A stretch of 64,000 nucleotides of DNA from Phaeosaccion multiseriatum (Eukaryota > Protista > Ochrophyta, other classes). Location: contig OZ218955.1 of the NCBI GenBank assembly GCA_965112735.1, forward strand, positions 2,294,001-2,358,000. The letters run 5' to 3'. The position numbers and the translations under genes are program-made. This document shows, piece after piece, positions 11,819 to 64,000 of this stretch. Below the pieces are notes generated by a model. The model was not told where the DNA came from. It did not search any database and saw only the letters and a list, made by a program, of their open reading frames with translations. Position 1 is the first letter of the stretch, and each line of letters starts with the position of its first letter.

Positions 11819-12588
11819 TCACAACATTGGTCTTTTTCGAGGTAGACCTTTCGAAAACGCCTCTTTCTGTCTGCGGTGCAGGGAGCTGTAGTAGTTCAGA
11901 GCACCCTTCGGGTTCTCCAGCCACTTTGGAGAGAGTCCGTCTTTCTTTTCGTAGTGAGGGAGAAGTCCGTCAAAGTTGGTTTCTGGGAGATGCGGCACTC
12001 CGCCACTCCGTTTGGGCCTCCGCTTCCGACGAAGGCGCCCTTCCTGCTGCTTCCCTCGTGACTTCTCTCCTGCATGTTTTTTCATATCAGTACGTACTCT
12101 CCCTTTCCGCAGACCCCTTGCTACTGAGGGTGCCACCACTGCCGTGGGGGGGGCATCACATGTCCCGGATGGCCGCCGTCCTCGCAAGCCCACCTTTGTG
12201 ATCGATCTCCACCGCTCCACCACTGCCCTCTTTATCACCTCGTCGTGGACGTTTTCCTGAGAGAGGGGGAGAGGGAGAGAGAGAGACGGAAAGAGAATGG
12301 AGAAAGAGGGGGAGGGGCGACAGAAAGAGAGAAGAGAGAGCGGGAGAGACGGAAAGAGAGGGAGAAAGACACAGAGAGGAGCGAGGGAGAGAGAGGAGAG
12401 AGAGAGTGAGGGTCGAGTAGAGAGAGACAGAGGACACAGGGGGAAAGAGAAGAGAAGAGAGGGAGAGGGGGGGGGAGAGAGAAAGAGGGGGGGAGAGGGA
12501 GAGGGTAGAGAGGGATCGAGAAGAGAGGGAGAGCGAGGGAGAACAGGAGAGAGAGATAGAGAGAGAGACAGAGAGAGAGGGAGAGAGA

Positions 12589-12677
<89 letters not shown>

Positions 12678-12907
12678 AAAGAGAGAGGTGAGAGAGAGGG
12701 CGAGAGAGAGCGGGAGGGAGGGCAGGAGAAAGAGACGAGAGGGAGAGGGGATAGAGAAGACAGAGAGGGAGGGAGAGAGCGCCCGTACACAGAGCGAGAG
12801 AGAGGCAGAGAGAGGAAGTTAAGCTCCACTCCTAAAGCTTCAACTCAGCGCTCCCTCACCTGAATGTATTCCGGTGGGAAGACCAGCTGGTGCGTCTGCT
12901 GCTCCAT
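11819..12907 (-). CDS. Hypothetical basic protein, ~161 aa (exons 12907-12860 and 12256-11819)
   Basis: ATG at 12907, MEQQTHQLVFPPEYIQ, GTGAG donor, CT-rich intron and CAG acceptor join in frame to ENVHDEVIKRAVVERW...; no family recognised. Confidence 0.5.
12260..12815. repeat. GA-rich simple repeat, with a near-pure (GA)n core at ~12581-12674, inside an intron
   Basis: Visible dinucleotide run. Confidence 0.95.
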
Positions 12908-43890: not shown

Positions 43891-46514
43891 TTTAAATTCG
43901 CGCTTAAGACTCGGCCTCCGGGTATGTGCACTCCGCCAGGATAGACCAGTGCAACCAAGAGAGGTGAGCGATTGAGAGGATGTCGAGGCTTCGAGTGCAA
44001 GCCATCGACTGCCCCTTCAACATGACGTTCGCTTGCTGTAGAACTATTTTGGAAGACTCTGGACAGCCTCACCTCCGAGGGTATGTACGTAGGGGGGGAG
44101 GGAGGGGAGGGAGAAAAGGAAGGGAGGATGGGGGAGAGAGAGGGGAGGGAAGGGAGGAAGGGAAGAAGGGAGCGAGGGAGGAAGGGGAGGAAGAGAGGGA
44201 GGCAAGGGAAGATGATAGGGGCGTATGGAGGGAGAGAAAGAGAGCACTGTCATTCTGGTATCTCCAGGAGGCCTCAGGCCTGTGAGAGCGCGGGCGGAGC
44301 AGAGATTTCTTACCAGACTGGAGGCTGAGCACTAACCGGTCCCTCTGCCTCCCTCGCTCGAACGCGTGCTGTGCTGCGCTGGGCTGCTTGTGTGCAGCGA
44401 GAGGCCAGGGAGGGTGACAGCTTACTGTCTTCGTGCCTCGACGAGACAGGGCGGAGGAAGTACGGCACTTCGCAGCAGGTCAGCATAGCACTCAAGGGTG
44501 GGGCAACGAGAGCTGGAAGGACCCCGCTCGGATCTCTGCCCACTCTCTTCGGAGTGGGGGTGCTACCGCTCTTGCCGCCCGTGGGGCTAATTGGCGCTTG
44601 CTTCAATTGTTGGACCACTGGTCCTCGACGAGAGTATTCCAGTACACTCACCGGACTGTTTAGGACGCCCTTGGCTGGGCTGGACGGATACTGACGGCAG
44701 ACACGATGCCTCCACGGCTACTCGGATGAATGGGGGTGAAGGGGAGCGTGGGGCCCAAGCCCCGCTACATCCGAACACCAGTGGCCGTCCACCCTCGAGG
44801 GGGCGGCCCGCTTTGGAGATTCTTTTGGTCTCCAACGGGGGAGCCCATTGCGGGGCTACGCTCTTAGTGAAGAGTCCTTCCCCCAACATCGGCGACGCCT
44901 CGAATCACCTCATACCCCGTTTCACAGCTGTCGACGACCTGGAGGCGAAGTCACCCACCTGAGTGCTCAGAACTAGCGACGCCGCGGATGTAGATGATGT
45001 TCCTCAGCACTCGGTGACGGCGGAGAGGAGGAGCGGCTTTCCCCCCTTGACAGGGCCGGATCTTTCCAAGGGGCTGCTCACACCGAGCTTCTTCGAGGAT
45101 CAAGAGGCACGTCTTCGGCCTCGCGAGTAGCGGAGAGAAGGTGTGTTTGCGTGCGTGTGCCTCCAGGAGCCCAGAGGGGGGAGAGGAGCGGGAGGGGCAT
45201 GGGAAGAGGTCTAATCTTTTCGTCGTACACTTTCCAAAGTAGCAATAGGAAGCAAGCAAGATGGGAAGTGTGGCTCTAAATGCGAGACCCACGGAGCAAC
45301 GCAGGCCCAGCGACGGTTGAATGCCGTTGCGTTCCAACCGGGCTGGAGCTCCAGCACTAGTGGTCGACTGAGTGGCTCCCATTCATACCCGACTCACCGC
45401 TCCAAGCCCACGCCTGCTCCCTCCCGTACGTGTGTATGTATGTGGTGGTACATGTCCCCTCGCAGTGGGTCATACCCGTGCTGGTCAACAGCGCGCCTCG
45501 TCCACGCACGGCGACCAAGGTTGAGGTGCTTATAGTACATCTTGGCGAGCACACGCAGGGCTGCCACATGTGATTTGCAAGCCGCACAGGACCCCCTTCC
45601 TCTCCTCCCCTCGCCCCTCTCCCCGCCACCCCATCGTAGTCATCACCCTGCAGTAGCAGTACGAGCCGAGCATGATTACGGTGTTCTACTTCGCTAACGG
45701 CCCCAATGAACACTCTCCGTCCTCATGAGTATGAGGTGCGTGGTTGCGTGCGTGTGGCCCAGAGACTGTAACGCACACCACACTTCGGTCGAACAGCAGC
45801 AGCATTAGCAGCAGTAACAGAATCAGCAGCAGTCGCAGCCTGTGCGTGTGCTCACCCCCCTCCAGATTCTGCCAAGTGCTTTTCTCGGAGGAAGATGCGG
45901 ACCAATAACGGGTCGCTCACGGTATGGACCGGCGGGGGGGCCAGTGGGACGCCTCTACCCTCTGAGCCTTCAGAGCCTTTGCAGATCGAAGGCCGGGCAC
46001 GGCGGGGCAGAGCAAGGCGGGGCGAGGGGAGGGCTCGTTCGGCCAGCAGTGGGGAAGGGAGGGAGGGAGGGCAAGGAAGCAGTGGGAAAAGGGAAGGCAG
46101 CAGTGAAAGTCCCACGTGGGAATGCCTCGGATGTGTGACATGCGCGAGCGGTGAAGAGTGTGCTACCGTGTCCGTAATGTAAGTATGGCCTGTGAAGTGG
46201 GGTGTACATGAGGTATATCTGTGCGCCGAGAGTAAGCACTGCGTAGCTCACGTAGACAGAGCCTTTCGCTGGGACAGAGCAAAGCGACCCTACCCTGACG
46301 CTGCCCGGCGGGGCGCTGTGGGTGACCGCCAGTCATCATTCATTCAGAACGAGTGCCATGTGTAAAGAGGATAGGCCAGGGTTGTCTCACTCAACTCCTA
46401 CTAAGGCAGCGAAGGAGGATGTAGAGCATCAGCACCAGAATAAGAAGCGGAGAGTTTTCCAAATGACAACGATCGATAATCCGGATTCGAACATGTACAC
46501 GTGCAAAATGTAAA

Positions 46515-46865
46515 CGGTGCTTCAGCAGCGGAGCCAAGCCAAGCCAAGCCACGGAAGTTCCGTTCTCGCAGAGTGGAGTCGACGCGGACAAACAGGGTCT
46601 TGAGAGCCGAGGGGTAGGGGGTGGAGCGTGGGCGCGTGTGTGGACCCCGAGGGGGGTTTTAGGGTAGAAATATATATGGCAGCAGATGAAGAGCAGTGTT
46701 CTCTGCTGCTCGAGATCAGAAGAGGAGGAGACCTGCTGTACTCGCCACCCTACCGTGATTGAAGGAGATCAAGAGCAGTTACGGGGGTGTGTGCAAGCAG
46801 GGAGGAGAGTAGAGACTGTGGTGTAGAAAAGCAAGGATCGCAGTAGCTAGGGCCCGACTGCTTCT
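46515..46865 (-). mobile_element. Diverged, inverted partial copy of the 717-bp element found inside the satellite
   Basis: Reverse complement aligns by eye to ~56288-56620 (GTGGAGTCGAC, GTGTGGACCCCGAGGGGGG, CTGCTGTACTCGCCACCCTAC, GGGCCCGACTGCTTCT). Confidence 0.85.
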
Positions 46866-49800
46866 GAGAGCCCAATCTGACCCCTGTGCTATTGGCTTCA
46901 ATACTAGAGGTTCAGGATATTTTGACGAATTGGACCCAAAGCCCGGATTTGTGGGGCCCAAACAGCCCAAACAGCCCAAACGAGGCATTTGCTGGCCACA
47001 CCATACCCGCGCAGGCCGATGCATGACTACGACTGGCCCAACCGACACACCACATGGCCACAATGCCGCCAAGTTGGAACTGGCATGGGCCCAAACCGCC
47101 CAATCTGGCCCCTCACTGGACCCAAAGCCGGGGTTTGTGGGGCCCAAACAGCCCAAACGAGGCATTTGCTGGCCACACCATACCCGCGCAGGAGACTGGA
47201 CGACTGCGACTGGCCCAACCGACACACCACATGGCCACAATGCCGCCAAGTTGGAGCTGGCATGGGCCCAAAACGCCCAATCTGGCCCCTCACTGGACCC
47301 AAAGCCGGGGTTTGTGGGGCCCAAACAGCCCAAACGAGGCATTTGCTGGCCACACCGTGCCCGCGCAGGAGACTGGACGACTGCGACGGGCCTAACCGAC
47401 ACACCACATGGCCACAACTCCGCTAATTCGGAACTGGCATGGGCCCAAAACGCCCAATCTGGCCCCTCACTGGACCCAAAGCCGGGGTTTGTGGGTTCTA
47501 ACCAGCCCAAACGAGGCATTTGCTCTCAACACCATGCCCGCGCAGGCCATTGGATGACTACGACTGGCCCAATCGACACACTACATGGCCACAATGCCGC
47601 CAAGGTGGAACTGGCATGGGCCCAAAACGCCCAATCTGGCCCCTCGAGGGACCCAACGCCATCAGGGTTTGTGGTGGCCCAAACACCCCAAACGAGGCAT
47701 TTGCTGGCCACACCATGCCCGCGCAGGCCGATGCATGACTGCGGCTGGCCCAACCGACACACCACATGGCCACAACGTCGCCAAGTTGGAACTGGCATGG
47801 GCCCAAAACGCCCAATCTGGCCCCTCGAGGGACTCAAAGCCAGGGTTTGTGGGGCCCAAACAGCCCAAACGAGGCATTTGCTGGCCACACCATGCCCGCG
47901 CAGGCCGATGCATGACTGCGACTGGCCCAACCGACACACCACATGGCAACAACCCTGCCAAGTTGGAACTGGCATGGGCCCAAAACGCCCAATCTGGCCC
48001 CTCACTGGACCCAAAGCCGGGGTTTGTGGGGCCCAAACAGCCCAAACGAGGCATTTGCTGGCCACACCATACCCGCGCAGGCCGATGCATGACTGCGACT
48101 GTCCCAACCGACACACCACATGGCCACAACCCTGCCAAGTTGGAACTGGCATGGGCCCAAAACGCCAGATCTGGCCCCTCACTGGACCCAAAGCCAGGGT
48201 TTGTCGGGCCCAAACAGCCCAAACGAGGCATTTGCTGGCCACACCATGCCCGCGCAGGAGACTGGACGACTGCGACGGGCCTAACGGACACACCACATGG
48301 CCACAACTCCGCTAATTCGGAACTGGCATGGGCCCAAAACGCCCAATCTGGCCCCTCACTGGACCCAAAGCCGGGGTTTGTGGGTTCTAACCAGCCCAAA
48401 CGAGGTATTTGCTCTCAACACCATGCCCGCGCAGGCCATTGGACGACTGCGACTGGCCCAACCGACACACCAGATGGCCACAACGCCGCCAAGTTGGAAG
48501 TGGCATGGGCCCTAAACGCCCAATCTGGCCCCTCGAGGGACCCAAAGCCATCAGGGTTTGTGGTGGCCCAAACAGCCCAAACGAGGCATTTGATGGCCAC
48601 ACCATGCCCGCGCAGGCCGATGCATGACTGCGACTGGCCCCACCGACACACCACATGGCCACAACGCCGCCGAGTTGGAAGTGGCATGGGCCCAAAACGC
48701 CCAATCTGGCCCCTCACTGGACCCAAAGCCGGGGTTTGTGGGGCCCAAACAGCCCAAACGAGGCATTTGCTGGCCACACCATGCCCGCGCAGGGCGATGC
48801 ATGACTGCGACTGGCCCCACCGACACACCACATGGCCACAACGCCGCCGAGTTGGAAGTGGCATGGGCCCAAAACGCCCAATCTGGCCCCTCACTGGACC
48901 CAAAGCCGGGGTTTGTGGGGCCCAAACAGCCCAAACGAGGCATTTGCTGGCCACACCATGCCCGCGCAGGGCGATGCATGACTGCGACTGGCCCCACCGA
49001 CACACCACATGGCCACAACGCCGCCGAGTTGGAAGTGGCATGGGCCCAAAACGCCCAATCTGGCCCCTCACTGGACCCAAAGCCGGGGTTTGTGGGGCCC
49101 AAACAGCCCAAACGAGGCATTTGCTGGCCACACCGTGCCCGCGCAGGAGACTGGACGACTGCGACTGGCCTAACCGACACACTACATGGCCACAACGTCG
49201 CCAAGTTGGAACTGGCATGGGCCCAAAACGCCCAATCTGGCCCCTCACTGGACCCAAAGCCGGGGTTTGTGGGGCCCAAACAGCCCAAACGAGGCATTTG
49301 CTGGCCACACCATACCCGTGCAGGCCGATGCGTGACTGCGACTGGCCCAACCGACACACTACATGGCCACAACGCCGCCAAGTTGGAACTGGCATGGGCC
49401 CAAAACGACTCAAGACCGGGGTTTGTGGGGCCCAAACAGCCCAAACGAGGCATTTGCTGGCCACACCATGCCCGCGTAGGAGACTGGACGACTGCGACTG
49501 GCCTAACCGACACACTACATGGCCACAACGTCGCCAAGTTGGAACTGACATGGGCCCAAAACGCCCAATCTGGCCCCTCACTGGACCCAAAGCCGGGGTT
49601 TGTCGGGCCAAAACAGCCCAAACGAGGCATTTGCTGGCCACACCGTGCCCGCGCAGGAGACTGGACGACTGCGACTGGCCCAACCGACACACTACATGGC
49701 CACAACGTCGCCAAGTTGGAACTGGCATGGGCCTAAAACGCCCAATCTGGCCCCTCACTGGACCCAAAGCCGGGGTTTGTGGGGCCCGAACAGCCCAAAC

Positions 49801-52800
49801 GAGGCATTTGCTGGCCACACCATGCCCGCGCAGGCCGATGCATGACTGCGACTGGCCCCACCGACACACCACATGGCCACAACGCCGCCGAGTTGGAAGT
49901 GGCATGGGCCCAAAACGCCCAATCTGGCCCCTCACTGGACCCAAAGCCGGGGTTCAATTGTGGGGCCCAAACAGCCCAAACGAGGCATTTGCTGGCCCCA
50001 CCATACCCGCGCAGGCCATTGGATGACTACGACTGGCCCAACCGACACACTACATTGCCACAACCTTGCCAAGTTGGAACTGGCATGGGCCCAAAACGCC
50101 CAATCTGGCCCCTCACTGGACCCAAAGCCGGGGTTTGTGGGGCCCAAACAGCCCAAACGAGGCATTTGCTGGCCACACCATACCCGCGCAGGCCGATGCG
50201 TGACTGCGACTGGCCCAACCGACACACCACATGGCCACAACGTCGCCAAGTTGGAACTGGCATGGGCCCAAAACGCCCAATCTGGCCCCTCACTGGACCC
50301 AAAGCCGGGGTTTGTGGGGCCCAAACAGCCCAAACGAGGCATTTGCTGGCCACACCATACCCGCGCAGGCCGATGCATGACTGCGACTGGCCCAACCGAC
50401 ACACCACATGGCCACAACGCTGCCAAGTTGGAACTGGCATGGGCCCAAAACGCCCAATCTGGCCCCTCACTGGACCCAAAGCCGGGGTTTGTGGGTTCTA
50501 ACCAGCCCAAACGAGGTATTTGCTCTCAACACCATGCCCGCGCAGGCCATTGGACGACTGCGACTGGCCCAACCGACACACCAGATGGCCACAACGCCGC
50601 CAAGTTGGAAGTGGCATGGGCCCAAAACGCCCAATCTGGCCCCTCGAGGGACCCAAAGCCATCAGGGTTTGTGGTGGCCCAAACAGCCCAAACGAGGCAT
50701 TTAATGGCCACACCATGCCCGCGCAGGCCGATGCATGACTGCGACTGGCCCCACCGACACACCAGATGGCCACAACGCCGCCGAGTTGGAAGTGGCATGG
50801 GCCCAAAACGCCCAATCTGGCCCCTCACTGGACCCAAAGCCGGAGTTTGTGGGGCCCAAACAGCCCAAACAAGGCATTTGCTGGCCACACCATGCCCGCG
50901 CAGGAGACTGGACGACTGCGACTGGCCTAACCGACACACTACATAGCCACAACGTCGCCAAGTTGGAACTGACATGGGCCCAAAACGCCCAATCTGGCCC
51001 CTCACTGGACCCAAAGCCGGGGTTTGTCGGGCCCAAACAGCCCAAACGAGGCATTTGCTGGCCACACCATACCCGTGCAGGCCGATGCGTGACTGCGACT
51101 GGCCCAACCGACACACTACATGGCCACAACGCCGCCAAGTTGGAACTGGCACGGGCCCAAAACGACTCAAGACCGGGGTTTGTGGGGCCCAAACAGCCCA
51201 AACGAGGCATTTGCTGGCCACACCATGCCCGCGTAGGAGACTGGACGACTGCGACTGGCCTAACCGACACACTACATAGCCACAACGTCGCCAAGTTGGA
51301 ACTGACATGGGCCCAAAACGCCCAATCTGGCCCCTCACTGGACCCAAAGCCGGGGTTTGTCGGGCCCAAACAGCCCAAACGAGGCATTTGCTGGCCACAC
51401 CGTGCCCGCGCAGGAGACTGGACGACTGCGACTGGCCCAACCGACACACTACATGGCCACAACGTCGCCAAGTTGGAACTGGCATGGGCCTAAAACGCCC
51501 AATCTGGCCCCTCACTGGACCCAAAGCCGGGGTTTGTGGGGCCCAAACAGCCCAAACGAGGCATTTGCTGGCCACACCATACCCGCGCAGGCCGATGCAT
51601 GACTGCGACTGGCCCCACCGACACACCACATGGCCACAACGCCGCCGAGTTGGAAGTGGCATGGGCCCAAAACGCCCAATCTGGCCCCTCACTGGACCCA
51701 AAGCCGGGGTTTGTGGGGCCCAAACAGCCCAAACGAGGCATTTGCTGGCCACACCATGCCCGCGCAGGGCGATGCATGACTGCGACTGGCCCCACCGACA
51801 CACCACATGGCCACAACGCCGCCGAGTTGGAAGTGGCATGGGCCCAAAACGCCCAATCTGGCCCCTCACTGGACCCAAAGCCGGGGTTTGTGGGGCCCAA
51901 ACAGCCCAAACGAGGCATTTGCTGGCCACACCGTGCCCGCGCAGGAGACTGGACGACTGCGACTGGCCTAACCGACACACTACATGGCCACAACGTCGCC
52001 AAGTTGGAACTGGCATGGGCCCAAAACGCCCAATCTGGCCCCTCACTGGACCCAAAGCCGGGGTTTGTGGGGCCCAAACAGCCCAAACGAGGCATTTGCT
52101 GGCCACACCATACCCGCGCAGGCCGATGCATGACTGAGACTGTCCCAACCGACACACCACATGGCCACAACCCTGCCAAGTTGGAATTGGCATGGGCCCA
52201 AAACGCCCAATCTGGCCCCTCACTGGACCCAAAGCCGGGGTTTGTGGGGCCCAAACAGCCCAAACGAGGCATTTGCTGGCCACACCATACCCGCGCAGGC
52301 CGATGCATGACTGCGACTGGCCCAACCGACACACCACATGGCCACAACGTCGCCAAGTTGGAACTGGCATGGGCCCAAAACGCCCAATCTGGCCCCTCAC
52401 TGGACCCAAAGCCGGGGTTTGTGGGGCCCAAACAGCCCAAACGAGGCATTTGCTGGCCACACCATACCCGCGCAGGGCGATGCGTGACTGCGACTGGCCC
52501 AATCGACACACTACATGGCCACAACGCCGCCAAGTTGGAGCTGGCATGGGCCCAAAACGCCAGATCTGGCCCCTCACTGGACCCAAAGCCAGGGTTTGTC
52601 GGGCCCAAACAGCCCAAACGAGGCATTTGCTGGCCACACCGTGCCCGCGCAGGAGACTGGACGACTGCGACGGGCCTAACCGACACACCACATGGCCACA
52701 ACTCCGCTAATTCGGAACTGGCATGGGCCCAAAACGCCCAATCTGGCCCCTCACTGGACCCAAAGCCGGGGTTTGTGGGTTCTAACCAGCCCAAACGAGG

Positions 52801-55800
52801 TTTTTGCTCTCAACACCATGCCCGCGCAGGCCATTGGACGACTGCGACTGGCCCAACCGACACACCAGATGGCCACAACGCCGCCAAGTTGGAGGTGGCA
52901 TGGGCCCAAAACGCCCAATCTGGCCCCTCGAGGGACCCAAAGCCATCAGGGTTTGTGGTGGCCCAAACAGCCCAAACGAGGCATTTAATGGCCACACCAT
53001 GCCCGCGCAGGCCGATGCATGACTGCGACTGGCCCAACCGACACACCACATGGCCACAACGCCGCCGAGTTGGAAGTGGCATGGGCCCAAAACGCCCAAT
53101 CTGGCCCCTCACTGGACCCAAAGCCGGGGTTTGTGGGGCCCAAACAGCCCAAACGAGGCATTTGCTGGCCACACCATGCCCGCGCAGGGCGATGCATGAC
53201 TGCGACTGGCCCCACCGACACACCACATGGCCACAACGCCGCCGAGTTGGAACTGGCATGGGCCCAAAACGCCCAATCTGGCCCCTCACTGGACCCAAAG
53301 CCGGGGTTTGTGGGGCCCAAACAGCCCAAACGAGGCATTTGCTGGCCACACCGTGCCCGCGCAGGAGACTGGACGACTGCGACTGGCCAAACCGACACAC
53401 TACATGGCCACAACGTCGCCAAGTTGGAACTGGCATGGGCCCAAAACGCCCAATCTGGCCCCTCACTGGACCCAAAGCCGGGGTTTGTGGGGCCCAAACA
53501 GCCCAAACGAGGCATTTGCTGGCCACACCATACCCGTGCAGGCCGATGCGTGACTGCGACTGGCCCAACCGACACACTACATGGCCACAACGCCGCCAAG
53601 TTGGAACTGACATGGGCCCAAAACGACTCAAGACCGGGGTTTGTGGGGCCCAAACAGCCCAAACGAGGCATTTGCTGGCCACACCATGCCCGCGTAGGAG
53701 ACTGGACGACTGCGACTGGCCTAACCGACACACTACATGGCCACAACGTCGCCAAGTTGGAACTGACATGGGCCCAAAACGCCCAATCTGGCCCCTCACT
53801 GGACCCAAAGCCGGGGTTTGTGGGTTCTAACCAGCCCAAACGAGGTTTTTGCTCTCCACACCATGCCCGCGCAGGCCATTGGACGACTGCGACTGGCCCA
53901 ACCGACACACTACATGGCCACAACGTCGCCAAGTTGGAACTGGCATGGGCCTAAAACGCCCAATCTGGCCCCTCACTGGACCCAAAGCCGGGGTTTGTGG
54001 GGCCCAAACAGCCCAAACGAGGCATTTGCTGGCCACACCATGCCCGCACAGGCCGATGCATGACTGCGACTGGCCCCACCGACACACCACATGGCCACAA
54101 CGCCGCCGAGTTGGAAGTGGCATGGGCCCAAAACGCCCAATCTGGCCCCTCACTGGACCCAAAGCCGGGGTTCAATTGTGGGGCCCAAACAGCCCAAACG
54201 AGGCATTTGCTGGCCCCACCATACCCGCGCAGGCCATTGGATGACTACGACTGGCCCAACCGACACACTACATTGCCACAACCTTGCCAAGTTGGAACTG
54301 GCATGGGCCCAAAACGCCCAATCTGGCCCCTCACTGGACCCAAAGCCAGGGTTTGTGGGGCCCAAACAGCCCAAACGAGGCATTTGCTGGCCACACCATG
54401 CCCGCGCAGGCCGATGCGTGACTGCGACTGGCCCAACCGACACACCACATGGCCACAACGTCGCCAAGTTGGAACTGGCATGGGCCCAAAACGCCCAATC
54501 TGGCCCCTCACTGGACCCAAAGCCGGGGTTTGTGGGGCCCAAACAGCCCAAACGAGGCATTTGCTGGCCACACCATACCCGCGCAGGCCGATGCATGACT
54601 GCGACTGTCTAAACCGACACACCACATGGCCACAACCTTGCCAAGTTGGAACTGGCATGGGCCCAAAACGCCCAATCTGGCCCCTCACTGGACCCAAAGC
54701 CGGGGTTTGTGGGGCCCAAACAGCCCAAACGAGGCATTTGCTGGCCACACCATACCCGCGCAGGCCGATGCATGACTGCGACTGGCCCCACCGACACACC
54801 ACATGGCCACAACGCCGCCGAGTTGGAAGTGGCATGGGCCCAAAACGCCCAATCTGGCCCCTCAATGGACCCAAAGCCGGGGTTTGTGGGGCCCAAACAG
54901 CCCAAACGAGGCATTTGCTGGCCACACCATGCCCGCGCAGGGCGATGCATGACTGCGACTGGCCCCACCGACACACCACATGGCCACAACGCCGCCGAGT
55001 TGGAAGTGGCATGGGCCCAAAACGCCCAATCTGGCCCCTCACTGGACCCAAAGCCGGGGTTTGTGGGGCCCAAACAGCCCAAACGAGGCATTTGCTGGCC
55101 CCACCATACCCGCGCAGGCCGATGCATGACTGCGACTGTCTAAACCGACACACCACATGGCCACAACGTCGCCAAGTTGGAACTGGCATGGGCCCAAAAC
55201 GCCCAATCTGGCCCCTCACTGGACCCAAAGCCGGGGTTTGTGGGGCCCAAACAGCCCAAACGAGGCATTTGCTGGCCACACCATACCCGCGCAGGCCGAT
55301 GCATGACTGCGACTGGCCCCACCGACACACCACATGGCCACAACGCCGCCGAGTTGGAAGTGGCATGGGCCCAAAACGCCCAATCTGGCCCCTCACTGGA
55401 CCCAAAGCCGGGGTTTGTGGGGCCCAAACAGCCCAAACGAGGCATTTGCTGGCCACACCATGCCCGCGCAGGGCGATGCATGACTGCGACTGGCCCAACC
55501 GAAACACCACATGGCCACAACGCCGCCGAGTTGGAAGTGGCATGGGCCCAAAACGCCCAATCTGGCCCCTCACTGGACCCAAAGCCGGGGTTTGTGGGGC
55601 CCAAACAGCCCAAACGAGGCATTTGCTGGCCACACCATGCCCGCGCAGGAGACTGGACGACTGCGACTGGCCTAACCGACACACTACATGGCCACAACGT
55701 CGCCAAGTTGGAACTGGCATGGGCCCAAAACGCCCAATCTGGCCCCTCACTGGACCCAAAGCCGGGGTTTGTGGGGCCCAAACAGCCCAAACGAGGCATT

Positions 55801-55902
55801 TGCTGGCCACACCATACCCGTGCAGGCCGATGCGTGACTGCGACTGGCCCAACCGACACACTACATGGCCACAACGCCGCCAAGTTGGAACTGGCATGGG
55901 CC

Positions 55903-56619
55903 ATAGGGGGATAAACTTTTCATTAAGAGTGCAGTCCTGAGAGGGACTCACCTCGGGGCACACAGTGCCTACGGGGTGTCGCTTCCCTGACGGGGGCGAG
56001 CACGGGCCTTTGGGGGCAGCGGTTCCGAGGAGCCGCTCATCCCCCCCTTAACTACTGAGTATCTAACTACTATGTACTAAACTAATCTAGATGGGTGGGT
56101 GGGTGGAGAAAGAAAAAACCTTTTGCCCGGCGAGAGCTCCATACTACACCAGGCTAAGGGTCTCTCACTTCTACTAGATGCGTGTGCGTAGCGCAAGCCC
56201 TTGCGACAGTTAGCATTGGGGGCACCTCTTGTGTTTGCGACAGTTAGCATGACACAAGTAAGCACACAGCACCTTCACCCTCACAAGAGAAGCAGTCGGG
56301 CCCTACTGCGATCCTTGCTTTCCTACACCATCGGTCTCTACTCTCCTCCCTGCTTGTACACGCTCCCGCACCTGCTCTCTATCTCCTTCAATCACTGTAG
56401 GGTGGCGAGTACAGCAGGGCTCCTCCTCTTCTGAGCTCCAGCGGAAAATCCAAATCCGTTGTTTTCCATCTGCTGCCATAAATATATTCTATCCTACCAG
56501 CCCCCCTCGGGGTCCACACACGCGCTCACGCTCCACCCTCCTCGGCTCTCAATACCCTGTTTATCCGTCGACTCCACTCCGCGAGAACAGAACTTCCGTG
56601 GCTTCGCTGCTGAAGCAGC
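55903..56619. mobile_element. 717-bp non-satellite element in the array, copy 1
   Basis: Sharp junctions GGGCC|ATAGGGGG and GAAGCAGC|GCCCGCGCAGG; essentially the same sequence at 58287 and 60667. Confidence 0.85.
55906..56045 (+). ncRNA. Candidate structured RNA module (four-way junction plus hairpin, closed by a terminal stem); family unknown
   Basis: Hand-folded helices with several G-U pairs on the + strand and a GAGA tetraloop; expression not shown. Confidence 0.4.
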
Positions 56620-58286
56620 GCCCGCGCAGGAGACTGGACGACTGCGACTGGCCTAACCGACACACTACATGGCCACAACGTCGCCAAGTTGGAACTGGCA
56701 TGGGCCCAAAACGCCCAATCTGGCCCCTCACTGGACCCAAAGCCGGGGTTTGTGGGGCCCAAACAGCCCAAACGAGGCATTTGCTGGCCACACCATACCC
56801 GTGCAGGCCGATGCGTGACTGCGACTGGCCCAACCGACACACTACATGGCCACAACGCCGCCAAGTTGGAGCTGGCATGGGCCCAAAACGACTCAAGACC
56901 GGGGTTTGTGGGGCCCAAACAGCCCAAACGAGGCATTTGCTGGCCACACCATGCCCGCGTAGGAGACTGGACGACTGCGACTGGCCTAACCGACACACTA
57001 CATGGCCACAACGTCGCCAAGTTGGAACTGACATGGGCCCAAAACGCCCAATCTGGCCCCTCACTGGACCCAAAGCCGGGGTTTGTCGGGCCCAAACAGC
57101 CCAAACGAGGCATTTGCTGGCCACACCGTGCCCGCGCAGGAGACTGGACGACTGCGACTGGCCCAACCGACACACTACATGGCCACAACGTCGCCAAGTT
57201 GGAACTGGCATGGGCCTAAAACGCCCAATCTGGCCCCTCACTGGACCCAAAGCCGGGGTTTGTGGGGCCCAAACAGCCCAAACGAGGCATTTGCTGGCCA
57301 CACCATGCCCGCGCAGGCCGATGTATGACTGCGACTGGCCCCACCGACACACCACATGGCCACAACGCCGCCGAGTTGGAAGTGGCATGGGCCCAAAACG
57401 CCCAATCTGGCCCCTCACTGGACCCAAAGCCGGGGTTCAATTGTGGGGCCCAAACAGCCCAAACGAGGCATTTGCTGGCCCCACCATACCCGCGCAGGCC
57501 ATTGGATGACTACGAATGGCCCAACCGACACACTACATTTCCACAACCTTGCCAAGTTGGAACTGGCATGGGCCCAAAACGCCCAATCTGGCCCCTCGAG
57601 GGACCCAAAGCCATCAGGGTTTGTGGTGGCCCAAACAGCCTAAACGAGGCATTTGCTGGCCACACCATGCCCGCGCAGGCCGATGCATGACTGCGACTGG
57701 CCCCACCGACACACCACATGGCCACAACGCCGCCGAGTTGGAAGTGGCATGGGCCCAAAACGCCCAATCTGGCCCCTCACTGGACCCAAAGCCGGGGTTT
57801 GTGGGGCCCAAACAGCCCAAACGAGGCATTTGCTGGCCACACCATGCCCGCGCAGGGCGATGCATGACTGCGACTGGCCCCACCGACACACCACATGGCC
57901 ACAACGCCGCCGAGTTGGAAGTGGCATGGGCCCAAAACGCCCAATCTGGCCCCTCACTGGACCCAAAGCCGGGGTTTGTGGGGCCCAAACAGCCCAAACG
58001 AGGCATTTGCTGGCCACACCGTGCCCGCGCAGGAGACTGGACGACTGCGACTGGCCTAACCGACACACTACATGGCCACAACGTCGCCAAGTTGGAACTG
58101 GCATGGGCCCAAAACGCCCAATCTGGCCCCTCACTGGACCCAAAGCCGGGGTTTGTGGGGCCCAAACAGCCCAAACGAGGCATTTGCTGGCCACACCATA
58201 CCCGTGCAGGCCGATGCGTGACTGCGACTGGCCCAACCGACACACTACATGGCCACAACGCCGCCAAGTTGGAACTGGCATGGGCC

Positions 58287-59003
58287 ATAGGGGGATAAAC
58301 TTTTCATTAAGAGTGCAGTCCTGAGAGGGACTCACCTCGGGGCACACAGTGCCTACGGGGTGTCGCTTCCCTGACGGGGGCGAGCACGGGCCTTTGGGGG
58401 CAGCGGTTCCGAGGAGCCGCTCATCCCCCCCTTAACTACTGAGTATCTAACTACTATGTACTAAACTAATCTAGATGGGTGGGTGGGTGGAGAAAGAAAA
58501 AACCTTTTGCCCGGCGAGAGCTCCATACTACACCAGGCTAAGGGTCTCTCACTTCTACTAGATGCGTGTGCGTAGCGCAAGCCCTTGCGACAGTTAGCAT
58601 TGGGGGCACCTCTTGTGTTTGCGACAGTTAGCATGACACAAGTAAGCACACAGCACCTTCACCCTCACAAGAGAAGCAGTCGGGCCCTACTGCGATCCTT
58701 GCTTTCCTACACCATCGGTCTCTACTCTCCTCCCTGCTTGTACACGCTCCCGCACCTGCTCTCTATCTCCTTCAATCACTGTAGGGTGGCGAGTACAGCA
58801 GGGCTCCTCCTCTTCTGAGCTCCAGCGGAAAATCCAAATCCGTTGTTTTCCATCTGCTGCCATAAATATATTCTATCCTACCAGCCCCCCTCGGGGTCCA
58901 CACACGCGCTCACGCTCCACCCTCCTCGGCTCTCAATACCCTGTTTATCCGTCGACTCCACTCCGCGAGAACAGAACTTCCGTGGCTTCGCTGCTGAAGC
59001 AGC
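58287..59003. mobile_element. 717-bp element, copy 2
   Basis: Same sequence and junctions as copy 1, offset 2384 bp. Confidence 0.85.
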
Positions 59004-60666
59004 GCCCGCGCAGGAGACTGGACGACTGCGACTGGCCTAACCGACACACTACATGGCCACAACGTCGCCAAGTTGGAACTGGCATGGGCCCAAAACGCCC
59101 AATCTGGCCCCTCACTGGACCCAAAGCCGGGGTTTGTCGGGCCCAAACAGCCCAAACGAGGCATTTGCTGGCCACACCATACCCGTGCAGGCCGATGCGT
59201 GACTGCGACTGGCCCAACCGACACACTACATGGCCACAACGCCGCCAAGTTGGAGCTGGCATGGGCCCAAAACGACTCAAGACCGGGGTTTGTGGGGCCC
59301 AAACAGCCCAAACGAGGCATTTGCTGGCCACACCATGCCCGCGTAGGAGACTGGACGACTGCGACTGGCCTAACCGACACACTACATGGCCACAACGTCG
59401 CCAAGTTGGAACTGACATGGGCCCAAAACGCCCAATCTGGCCCCTCACTGGACCCAAAGCCGGGGTTTGTCGGGCCCAAACAGCCCAAACGAGGCATTTG
59501 CTGGCCACACCGTGCCCGCGCAGGAGACTGGACGACTGCGACTGGCCCAACCGACACACTACATGGCCACAACGTCGCCAAGTTGGAACTGGCATGGGCC
59601 TAAAACGCCCAATCTGGCCCCTCACTGGACCCAAAGCCGGGGTTTGTGGGGCCCAAACAGCCCAAACGAGGCATTTGCTGGCCACACCGTGCCCGCGCAG
59701 GAGACTGGACGACTGCGACGGGCCTAACCGACACACCACATGGCCACAACTCCGCCAATTCGGAACTGGCATGGGCCCAAAACGCCCAATCTGGCCCCTC
59801 ACTGGACCCAAAGCCGAGGTTTGTGGGTTCTAACCAGCCCAAACGAGGTATTTGCTCTCAACACCATGCCCGCGCAGGCCATTGGACGACTGCGACTGGC
59901 CCAACCGACACACCAGATGGCCACAACGCCGCCAAGTTGGAAGTGGCATGGGCCCAAAACGCCCAATCTGGCCCCTCGAGGGACCCAAAGCCATCAGGGT
60001 TTGTGGTGGCCCAAACAGCCTAAACGAGGCATTTGCTGGCCACACCATGCCCGCGCAGGCCGATGCATGACTGCGACTGGCCCCACCGACACACCACATG
60101 GCCACAACGCCGCCGAGTTGGAAGTGGCATGGGCCCAAAACGCCCAATCTGGCCCCTCACTGGACCCAAAGCCGGGGTTTGTGGGGCCCAAACAGCCCAA
60201 ACGAGGCATTTGCTGGCCACACCATGCCCGCGCAGGGCGATGCATGACTGCGACTGGCCCCACCGACACACCACATGGCCACAACGCCGCCGAGTTGGAA
60301 GTGGCATGGGCCCAAAACGCCCAATCTGGCCCCTCACTGGACCCAAAGCCGGGGTTTGTGGGGCCCAAACAGCCCAAACGAGGCATTTGCTGGCCACACC
60401 GTGCCCGCGCAGGAGACTGGACGACTGCGACTGGCCTAACCGACACACTACATGGCCACAACGTCGCCAAGTTGGAACTGGCATGGGCCCAAAACGCCCA
60501 ATCTGGCCCCTCACTGGACCCAAAGCCGGGGTTTGTGGGGCCCAAACAGCCCAAACGAGGCATTTGCTGGCCACACCATACCCGTGCAGGCCGATGCGTG
60601 ACTGCGACTGGCCCAACCGACACACTACATGGCCACAACGCCGCCAAGTTGGAACTGGCATGGGCC

Positions 60667-61386
60667 ATAGGGGGATAAACTTTTCATTAAGAGTGCAGTC
60701 CTGAGAGGGACTCACCTCGGGGCACACAGTGCCTACGGGGTGTCGCTTCCCTGACGGGGGCGAGCACGGGCCTTTTGGGGGCAGCGGTTCCGAGGAGCCG
60801 CTCATCCCCCCCCTTAACTACTGAGTATCTAACTACTATGTACTAAACTAATCTAGATGGGTGGGTGGGTGGAGAAAGAAAAAACCCTTTTGCCCGGCGA
60901 GAGCTCCATACTACACCAGGCTAAGGGTCTCTCACTTCTACTAGATGCGTGTGCGTAGCGCAAGCCCTTGCGACAGTTAGCATTGGGGGCACCTCTTGTG
61001 TTTGCGACAGTTAGCATGACACAAGTAAGCACACAGCACCTTCACCCTCACAAGAGAAGCAGTCGGGCCCTACTGCGATCCTTGCTTTCCTACACCATCG
61101 GTCTCTACTCTCCTCCCTGCTTGTACACGCTCCCGCACCTGCTCTCTATCTCCTTCAATCACTGTAGGGTGGCGAGTACAGCAGGGCTCCTCCTCTTCTG
61201 AGCTCCAGCGGAAAATCCAAATCCGTTGTTTTCCATCTGCTGCCATAAATATATTCTATCCTACCAGCCCCCCTCGGGGTCCACACACGCGCTCACGCTC
61301 CACCCTCCTCGGCTCTCAATACCCTGTTTATCCGTCGACTCCACTCCGCGAGAACAGAACTTCCGTGGCTTCGCTGCTGAAGCAGC
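60667..61386. mobile_element. ~720-bp element, copy 3
   Basis: Same sequence and junctions; the only differences noticed are homopolymer lengths. Confidence 0.85.
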
Positions 61387-64000
61387 GCCCGCGCAGGAGA
61401 CTGGACGACTGCGACTGGCCTAACCGACACACTACATGGCCACAACGTCGCCAAGTTGGAACTGGCATGGGCCCAAAACGCCCAATCTGGCCCCTCACTG
61501 GACCCAAAGCCGGGGTTTGTCGGGCCCAAACAGCCCAAACGAGGCATTTGCTGGCCACACCATACCCGTGCAGGCCGATGCGTGACTGCGACTGGCCCAA
61601 CCGACACACTACATGGCCACAACGCCGCCAAGTTGGAGCTGGCATGGGCCCAAAACGACTCAAGACCGGGGTTTGTGGGGCCCAAACAGCCCAAACGAGG
61701 CATTTGCTGGCCACACCATGCCCGCGTAGGAGACTGGACGACTGCGACTGGCCTAACCGACACACTACATGGCCACAACGTCGCCAAGTTGGAACTGACA
61801 TGGGCCCAAAACGCCCAATCTGGCCCCTCACTGGACCCAAAGCCGGGGTTTGTCGGGCCCAAACAGCCCAAACGAGGCATTTGCTGGCCACACCGTGCCC
61901 GCGCAGGAGACTGGACGACTGCGACTGGCCCAACCGACACACTACATGGCCACAACGTCGCCAAGTTGGAACTGGCATGGGCCTAAAACGCCCAATCTGG
62001 CCCCTCACTGGACCCAAAGCCGGGGTTTGTGGGGCCCAAACAGCCCAAACGAGGCATTTGCTGGCCACACCATGCCCGCGCAGGCCGATGTATGACTGCG
62101 ACTGGCCCCACCGACACACCACATGGCCACAACGCCGCCGAGTTGGAAGTGGCATGGGCCCAAAACGCCCAATCTGGCCCCTCACTGGACCCAAAGCCGG
62201 GGTTCAATTGTGGGGCCCAAACAGCCCAAACGAGGCATTTGCTGGCCCCACCATACCCGCGCAGGCCATTGGATGACTACGAATGGCCCAACCGACACAC
62301 TACATTTCCACAACCTTGCCAAGTTGGAACTGGCATGGGCCCAAAACGCCCAATCTGGCCCCTCACTGGACCCAAAGCCGGGGTTTGTGGGGCCCAAACA
62401 GCCCAAACGAGGCATTTGCTGGCCACACCATACCCGCGCAGGCCATTGGATGATTACGACTGGCCCAACCGACACACCAGATGGCCACAACGCCGCCAAG
62501 TTGGAAGTGGCATGGGCCCAAAACGCCCAATCTGGCCCCTCGAGGGACCCAAAGCCATCAGGGTTTGTGGTGGCCCAAACAGCCCAAACGAGGCATTTGA
62601 TGGCCACACCATGCCCGCGCAGGCCGATGCATGACTGCGACTGGCCCCACCGACACACCACATGGACACAACGCCGCCGAGTTGGAAGTGGCATGGGCCC
62701 AAAACGCCCAATCTGGCCCCTCACTGGACCCAAAGCCGGGGTTTGTGGGGCCCAAACAGCCCAAACGAGGCATTTGCTGGCCACACCATGCCCGCGCAGG
62801 CCGATGCATGACTGCGACTGGCCCCACCGACACACCACATGGCCACAACGCCGCCGAGTTGGAAGTGGCATGGGCCCAAAACGCCCAATCTGGCCCCTCA
62901 CTGGACCCAAAGCCGGGGTTCAATTGTGGGGCCCAAACAGCCCAAACGAGGCATTTGCTGGCCCCACCATACCCGCGCAGGCCATTGGATGACTACGACT
63001 GGCCCAACCGACACACTACATTGCCACAACCTTGCCAAGTTGGAACTGGCATGGGCCCAAAACGCCCAATCTGGCCCCTCACTGGACCCAAAGCCGGGGT
63101 TTGTGGGGCCCAAACAGCCCAAACGAGGCATTTGCTGGCCACACCATGCCCGCGCAGGCCGATGCGTGACTGCGACTGGCCCAACCGACACACCACATGG
63201 CCACAACGTCGCCAAGTTGGAACTGGCATGGGCCCAAAACGCCCAATCTGGCCCCTCACTGGACCCAAAGCCGGGGTTTGTGGGGCCCAAACAGCCCAAA
63301 CGAGGCATTTGCTGGCCACACCATACCCGCGCAGGCCGATGCATGACTGCGACTGGCCCAACCGACACACCACATGGCCACAACGCTGCCAAGTTGGAAC
63401 TGGCATGGGCCCAAAACGCCCAATCTGGCCCCTCACTGGACCCAAAGCCGGGGTTTGTGGGGCCCAAACAGCCCAAACGAGGCATTTGCTGGCCACACCA
63501 TGCCCGCGTAGGAGACTGGACGACTGCGACTGGCCTAACCGACACACTACATGGCCACAACGTCGCCAAGTTGGAACTGACATGGGCCCAAAACGCCCAA
63601 TCTGGCCCCTCACTGGACCCAAAGCCGGGGTTTGTCGGGCCCAAACAGCCCAAACGAGGCATTTGCTGGCCACACCGTGCCCGCGCAGGAGACTGGACGA
63701 CTGCGACTGGCCCAACCGACACACTACATGGCCACAACGTCGCCAAGTTGGAACTGGCATGGGCCTAAAACGCCCAATCTGGCCCCTCACTGGACCCAAA
63801 GCCGGGGTTTGTGGGGCCCAAACAGCCCAAACGAGGCATTTCCTGGCCACACCATGCCCGCGCAGGCCGATGCATGACTGCGACTGGCCCCACCGACACA
63901 CCACATGGCCACAACGCCGCCGAGTTGGAAGTGGCATGGGCCCAAAACGCCCAATCTGGCCCCTCACTGGACCCAAAGCCGGGGTTCAATTGTGGGGCCC

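Follow-up and report, generated by a model that had tools for sequence, protein, structure and literature searches.

The window, by which we mean the whole stretch of 64,000 nucleotides that was analysed, contains a 177-bp satellite array (46965..63986) with a 2380-2384-bp higher-order repeat, and the array hosts three shortened copies of a repeated element. Each copy is 715 bp long and has the order M, x, A, where M is a strongly folding module, x a linker and A a repeat. The sequence-only reading had reported three copies of the module, and these were confirmed on the plus strand at 55906..56045 (140 nt), 58290..58429 (identical to the first) and 60670..60810 (141 nt, one additional T), with periods of 2384 and 2380 bp between their starts. 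The module was also correctly described as terminal in a satellite-embedded repeated element. The linker (approximately 55 nt adjoining M, rich in stop codons) and repeat A occupy 56046..56620, 58430-59004 and 60811-61387 on the minus strand, which is the sense of the open reading frames (ORFs) of the element. The copies end exactly at the CGCTGC-TGAA-GCAGCG hairpin that had been noticed at the opposite end, located at 56605..56620; read in ORF sense, both repeat A and the whole element have their exact 5' terminus here. The family 2 counterpart of this hairpin retains TTCAGCAGCG but has a stem of only 3 bp.

The 2.38-kb higher-order repeat consists of one A-x-M remnant and about 9.4 satellite monomers. 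The copies are without the 81-nt segment S that adjoins M elsewhere, and on their M side one satellite monomer is short of 92 bp. Between repeat A in the window and the A-repeat portions of tandem units outside it, identity is 99-100%, and the A1 repeat of a full element matches as well. The window copies are shortened A-x-M remnants that have been multiplied together with the satellite as one higher-order repeat, and they do not represent three separate insertions. The linker (56046-56100 in the window, L049:3470-3521 elsewhere) has a CCCACCCACCC motif and, after it, an AT-rich part with stops in all frames of both strands, and it is kept between families 1 and 2.

The fold that had been drawn by hand for 55906-56045 was obtained by RNAfold with identical stems and hairpins, all on the plus strand. 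The module is enclosed by an outer stem (GGGGGAU/AUCCCCC, 55906-12/56039-45), and inside it a junction stem (GUGC at 55929-32 with GCAC at 56000-03) closes three abutting hairpins with 0 unpaired bases: hairpin 1 with a GAGA loop (55933-48), hairpin 2 (55949-78) and hairpin 3 (55979-99). A small hairpin (56006-17) and hairpin 4 (AGCGGUUC-CGAG-GAGCCGCU, 56018-37) complete the structure. The MFE of the plus strand is -73.3 kcal/mol (z -5.11), and 0/200 dinucleotide shuffles were as stable, so the fold withstands this comparison. The reverse strand gave -60.6 kcal/mol (z -3.48), and with DNA parameters both strands were significant, with z -3.7 and -3.0. A search of the whole window against Rfam gave no match at the gathering score, and between 55800 and 56800 there was none even at E<=10; none was matched at E<=1 by five other families of M, and ARAGORN found 0 tRNA genes in the window, in agreement with the earlier statement that signatures of tRNA, 5S, hammerhead and HDV are absent.

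To the left of the array, a decayed C-terminal fragment of a tyrosine-recombinase (YR) ORF was found on the plus strand at 44502..44714 (contig 2338502-2338714), 66% identical over residues 301-371 and with one stop. At a distance of 18 nt from it lies a diverged M of 153 nt, family F5, on the minus strand (44732..44884; covariance-model match 66.8 bits, E 1.7e-16; fold z -1.1 / -2.7), and at the left border of the array there is an inverted fragment of repeat A on the minus strand (46542..46865), 84% identical over element positions 386-706. These three pieces are a decayed copy of another family. Just past the window on contig 6 (L042:930-1120), an M of family F4 without its 5' single-stranded part stands head-to-head with an A-x fragment of opposite orientation, and this is a rearranged junction of two element fragments. 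The gene-bearing part of the window also has a (GA)n microsatellite of approximately 265 units (12259-12779).

The element that contains the module

The assembly that we searched is eukaryotic and GC-rich, 67 Mb in 22 contigs. At least 40 copies of M were found in it by BLAST and at least 100 with a covariance model (R1) built from three families, and they cluster on 15 contigs, in a single satellite-rich region per contig. Outside the window the copies form head-to-tail arrays with a unit of about 796 bp, made up of the 81-nt S, M and a 575-bp body. Every such array closes with an extra S-M, and rightward of the last M several kilobases are conserved. A complete element was found on contig 12 (L041), where three consecutive ORFs lie on the strand opposite to M. 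Read in ORF sense, the layout is A1 - ORF1 - ORF2 (RT/RNase H) - ORF3 (YR) - B1 - A2 - x - B2. Repeat B consists of M in reverse complement and then the 81-nt tail S, so that M accounts for its first 140 nt, and repeat A is the 519-bp end of the body, which recurs upstream of ORF1. At L033 and L041 S-M, that is repeat B, occurs twice and repeat A both in the 3' region and at the 5' end; family 2 has the same split-repeat layout.

ORF3, of 371 aa, matches PF00589 (Phage_integrase) with 30 bits as compared to a gathering score of 27.1 (E 5.5e-7) and has weak XerC/XerD matches; a word-based protein search gave no match for it. This YR ORF lies downstream of the RT ORF on the same strand. ORF2, of 762 aa, was blank in Pfam, NCBIfam, a word-based protein search and a single-sequence PDB search, a 6-sequence profile did not match the PDB, and its AlphaFold2 model was unusable (mean pLDDT 32.5). 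A profile of ORF2 paralogs, used in an exhaustive HMM search, retrieved 6758 relatives. One homolog, P0055, matches RVT_1 with 30.8 bits (cut-off 29.6), and in a 28-member alignment the RT triad (D252 and D365-D366, in a YVDD motif) and the RNase H residues D557/E607/D636/D687 are invariant. The 28-member profile matched 189 PDB chains, and the 60 best listed of these 189 are reverse transcriptases or RT-bearing polyproteins, with 8r0s (polyprotein RT) at 5e-8, HIV-1 RT at 1e-5 and Ty3 RT at 2.8e-5 as the best matches. ORF2 is therefore an RT/RNase H. The methyltransferase domain that separates Ngaro from PAT/DIRS1 was not detected in ORF2, but Pfam detects no domain at all there, so that its absence says little.

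The architecture A1-[ORFs]-B1A2B2 defines the Ngaro elements (PMC8547959; PMC4157794). M belongs to the split direct repeat of a Ngaro-type YR retrotransposon of the DIRS order, which adds one more element to the Ngaro kind. Ngaro1-4 of Cafeteria burkhardae (PMC8547959) and DrNgaro of zebrafish have, like here, A1-[Gag-like, RT/RNase H, YR]-B1A2B2, and the likeness extends to solo and tandem AB repeats, the absence of a target-site duplication and a size of about 6 kb. In contrast to known Ngaro elements, those of this alga are almost confined to satellite blocks and their ORFs have diverged too far for Pfam RVT_1 to recognise them. The window A-x-M pieces are also comparable to SIRE, which is known alongside VIPER from Trypanosoma cruzi (PMC6681497) and is short, abundant, non-coding and equivalent to the A2+B2 part of a YR retroelement, but SIRE is dispersed, whereas the window pieces are without the 81-nt B tail and have been multiplied in a satellite higher-order repeat.

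The position of M in the element is fixed. It starts 16-19 nt past the YR stop codon in F1, F2, F3, F5 and F6, the start of repeat B is exactly the G-run of M, and the distance from M to the terminus of the element is 81 nt. The full element is inserted in a 185-bp variant of the satellite, with CCTGGACTGGGC directly before it and ATGTTGTGACC directly after it, and nothing is duplicated or lost. By eye, no bases common to the circle junction and the satellite target were seen at the junction. The window position 56620/56621 and the positions L033:1932/1933 and L041:6819/6820 fall, also by eye and within 1 nt, at a homologous place in the satellite monomer (...GGGC|ATG...), where the full element of contig 12 is oriented opposite to the window copies. 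The monomer may thus contain a preferred target site that is nearly palindromic.

Other classes of element or gene were considered and dropped. The tandem units of about 800 bp had raised an array of spliced-leader or snRNA genes, dropped given the ORFs and the split repeats, and the terminal hairpin a Helitron, rejected as ORFs for RT and YR are present. An LTR, a TRIM or the LTR of a retrozyme was rejected because there are no TG...CA termini, no conserved primer-binding site and no hammerhead: the S-M repeat begins with TTCTCG and ends with CCCCC, and a candidate primer-binding site that starts with TGG is seen after M in F1 and is not conserved in F2.

L033:1933-3700 and L031 (contig 6, 2364000-2372000) belong to two subfamilies. 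Identity between them is 93% in the split repeats (S, M, A) and only 55-79% in the adjoining remnant of recombinase-coding sequence. The sequences suggest that repeats may have been exchanged, or converted, between elements.

Conservation of the module across families

Seven sequence-divergent families of M were aligned and an eighth was folded only; their lengths are 140-177 nt. The hairpin sequences of the eight families are different and the hairpin plan is common to all of them. It starts with the G-run, a conserved single-stranded stretch (consensus AAGGACTCTTCATTAAGAG) and a short stem, continues with hairpin 1, a long hairpin 2, hairpin 3 and GCAC, and ends with a conserved UUCGGAUGUAG stretch, a hairpin 4 of variable length and UCA followed by a C-run. 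Hairpin 1 has 6 bp and GNRA-type loops (GAGA, GAAA, GUGA and GCAA) across the families. Hairpins 2 and 4 are unalignable between families and still form hairpins.

To count pairs we used an unfitted MAFFT alignment of 13 representatives of the seven families, with 37 pairs; these come from one genome and about seven lineages. Standard pairs fill 92.5% of the cells, as compared to 44-59% when the partners are slid by 1-3 columns, and compensatory, both-sided changes are seen in 8 pairs as compared to 1-5. The covariation score is 0.232 against 0.168+-0.011 in shuffles, 0/500 of which reach it, and RNAalifold found 9 compensated pairs in three families. Covariation among homologs, proposed earlier as a check on the fold, is thus present. 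M is a real, strongly folded and evolutionarily maintained module.

The perfect four-way junction, by which the module had been characterised, is true of the window copy, where no base is unpaired, but not as a general trait. The junction-closing stem is the weakest helix, with 82.7% of its cells paired over the families; in F3 and F4 its middle position has A-A or G-A, and a C-G pair is once exchanged for U-A. F1 and F6 have the perfect junction, the group as a whole does not. In F2 the MFE favours an alternative 5' hairpin.

In its plus-strand orientation in the window, M is antisense to the ORFs, which equals minus-strand cDNA or antisense RNA. The z scores for this orientation and for the ORF sense are -5.1 and -3.5 in F1, -4.5 and -3.2 in F2, -5.6 and -6.0 in F4 and -1.1 and -2.7 in F5. 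Since both strands are significant and the stabler one varies by family, the stability of the fold does not single out an acting strand. The sequence-only reading had taken an excess of G-U pairs as a sign of an RNA read from the plus strand. Such an excess exists in the window family (7 vs 1), but 13 representatives of eight families have 64 G-U against 47 A-C (G-U on the other strand) in the same orientation, so the argument is specific to that family. The GNRA loop, put forward for the same strand, fared better: the GNRA-type loop of hairpin 1 is conserved in this orientation and is the sole conserved asymmetry.

Family F4 (175 nt) is abundant, and in the sampled copies about 20 nt resembling the end of the YR ORF stand beside M, followed by sequence that looks non-coding. 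F4 is probably gene-less, and its retention of M would be the pattern expected of a required cis element.

Two F1 copies, L033:2921-2940 and L048:437-456, have the loop of hairpin 4 exactly inverted (GGTTC-AGAG-GAACC and GGTTC-CTCT-GAACC). This flip-flop-like inversion looks like what template switching produces, and compensatory-looking changes in short palindromes can stem from template switching without selection. It is conceivable, then, that M has no function of its own and is a hitch-hiking cluster of palindromes, in which pairing is kept by quasi-palindrome correction or gene conversion instead of by selection. The exact AGAG / CTCT inversion is a signature of template switching, about 89% of the pairs are Watson-Crick, the wobble pairs are without a consistent strand bias, and the split repeats are homogenised (93% identical against 55-79% in the adjacent interior), all of which fit such an origin. 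It does not account well for the one plan that is seen over eight families although hairpins 2 and 4 cannot be aligned, for the fixed position relative to the YR stop, for the GNRA-type loops kept in hairpin 1 or for the retention of M in F4, probably without genes. We regard it as unlikely, although it is the rival that survives best.

Possible roles of the module

To our knowledge, the priming of the RT and the rebuilding of the ends are unsolved in the YR retrotransposons (DIRS, PAT, Ngaro and VIPER), and DIRS-1 is the sole experimental system. It is probable, judging from sequence comparison, that M is a cis-acting replication signal which marks the boundary of repeat B in the Ngaro-type element. 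This interpretation is made because M coincides with the repeat boundary, occurs in both B1 and B2 and is kept by a family that is probably non-autonomous, and also because the primer and end-restoration steps of YR elements are unsolved and the intermediate of DIRS-1 is a single-stranded cDNA. DIRS-1 replicates via this cDNA with an unknown primer, and a 3' hairpin has been proposed to serve as the primer (PMC7192593). The multi-hairpin fold of M would be read by the RT, the Gag-like protein or the recombinase of the element, either in first-strand synthesis or in the B1-B2 strand transfers that rebuild the ends of the element. The G-run at the ORF-proximal edge of M may at the same time be a polypurine primer site for the plus strand and thereby set the boundary of B, since each of the three lineages examined has purine-rich runs immediately after the YR stop. 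Of the four suggestions first made for the module, a ribozyme, a SINE-like head, an RT-recognition element and a source of satellite transcripts, the RT-recognition element comes nearest to what the context supports.

The signal may act in either of two molecules. We lean tentatively towards the folded, minus-strand single-stranded cDNA, which has the plus-strand sequence of the window and is slightly favoured over the sense RNA; that M acts in the 3' region of the sense RNA is only a little less probable.

Among known systems, DIRS-1 of Dictyostelium (PMC7192593) is similar in being a YR retroelement enriched at centromere-like repeats, in having non-coding repeat parts that are essential in cis, and in the single-stranded cDNA intermediate and the proposed 3' hairpin primer. 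It differs in its inverted terminal repeats and in an ICR that pairs with the ends, whereas M is folded internally and lies in direct repeats; we found no complementarity of M to the ends of the element. The 3' hairpin of DIRS-1 (PMC7192593) is the only structural hint in the literature on YR retroelements that was searched. A full-text search on YR retroelements found no account of a conserved module with several hairpins where repeat B begins, and in the literature searched no conserved, covarying module of this kind is described at that place in known Ngaro elements. By this comparison M seems to be a new feature within a known kind of element. Folded signals near a 3' end occur in hepadnaviruses, as epsilon in the terminally redundant pgRNA, and as the 3' UTR stem-loops of R2 and UnaL2. 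M resembles these in that the fold is present in both copies of a terminal redundancy and, by analogy, could recruit the RT or direct template switches, but there is no similarity in sequence or shape.

A more specific version of the replication signal can also be imagined, in which the two M copies of the minus-strand cDNA fold into a structure like a Holliday junction, which the element's own YR or RT/RNase H would recognise in order to circularise or complete the cDNA. The analogy is with the integron attC sites and the attP(+) site of the CTX phage, where tyrosine recombinases act on a folded single strand, and M could fold with four arms in the minus cDNA. If true, M would be the counterpart of these sites in a eukaryotic retroelement, and the recognition of folded cDNA would explain how elements with split direct repeats rebuild their ends. 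On the other hand, crossover takes place in attC and attP(+) themselves, which are hairpins, simple or forked, with extrahelical bases, whereas M has short arms and no conserved strand bias and lies 81 nt from the terminus, and thus is not the crossover point itself. We consider this version a long shot.

It is still less probable that M is regulatory, as a hairpin-rich source or target of small RNA or as a part of an antisense promoter or transcript, as could be argued by analogy with DIRS-1, which has an antisense transcript and is under tight RNAi control (PMC7192593 for the latter). M is antisense to the ORFs and has its GNRA loop on the antisense strand, as such a role would have it, but its stems of 4-13 bp are short for typical precursors of hairpin siRNA or miRNA.

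Two of the original suggestions are very improbable. Hammerheads are found in retrozymes and Penelope-like elements, and HDV-like ribozymes in R2 and L1Tc. A new self-cleaving ribozyme, trimming transcripts of the element or the satellite, would suit the compact multi-helix fold in tandem units of about 796 bp, which are arranged as in retrozymes. Neither F1 at E<=10 nor five other families at E<=1 matched a known ribozyme (hammerhead, HDV-like, hairpin, twister, pistol or hatchet), and the near-perfect helices with no unpaired nucleotides in the junction leave no candidate for a catalytic core; moreover, the conserved single-stranded sequences are only found outside the junction, whose closing stem is mismatched in two families. 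Equally improbable is an independent gene for a small RNA, or the head of a SINE, whose plus-strand transcript merely adjoins the element: in spite of the plus-strand fold (z -5.1) and the GNRA loop on that strand, there is no similarity to tRNA, 5S, 7SL or snRNA, the strand has an internal CTTTTC and no T-run downstream, M is present twice, within B1 and within B2, and it lies inside the repeat of a YR element, at the fixed distance from the YR stop, in every family with readable neighbours.

As a candidate cis signal of 140-177 nt with sharp boundaries, M is open to mutation, probing and binding assays. For annotators it implies that an 'orphan RNA' with a strong fold, met in satellite DNA, can belong to the repeat of a retroelement.

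Distant lineages and metagenome relatives

A degenerate DNA pattern of M had no match in a metagenome collection. A protein-guided scan of it gave 41 loci that encode relatives with 24-37% identity, many of them with a YR ORF after the RT, and the covariance model R1 found no M in these 41 distant Ngaro-like loci. In a distant lineage, with a YR that is about 30% identical, a different branched fold lies directly after the YR stop (z -5.25 in the sense strand as compared to -4.4 in the other). The 150 nt past the YR stops of the metagenome loci had a mean z of -1.3, with 5/18 at or below -2.8 (one window was shifted after inspection), as compared to a mean of -0.3 and 0/18 in coding-window controls from the same loci. 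The extra structure after distant YR stops is a weak trend.

Three of the metagenome loci, L100:2524-2632, L108:2347-2487 and L103:2387-2457, have a long imperfect hairpin a few bases from the YR stop (z -2.8 to -4.0), and two of these hairpins have a common inner GGGTCGCCTG...CAGGCTTCCCC stem. Purine-rich tracts with many G-runs were observed in the first 20-45 nt past the YR stop at L044, L049, L068 and L071, in 3/3 lineages examined, and are similar to the polypurine tracts known from retroviruses and LTR elements.
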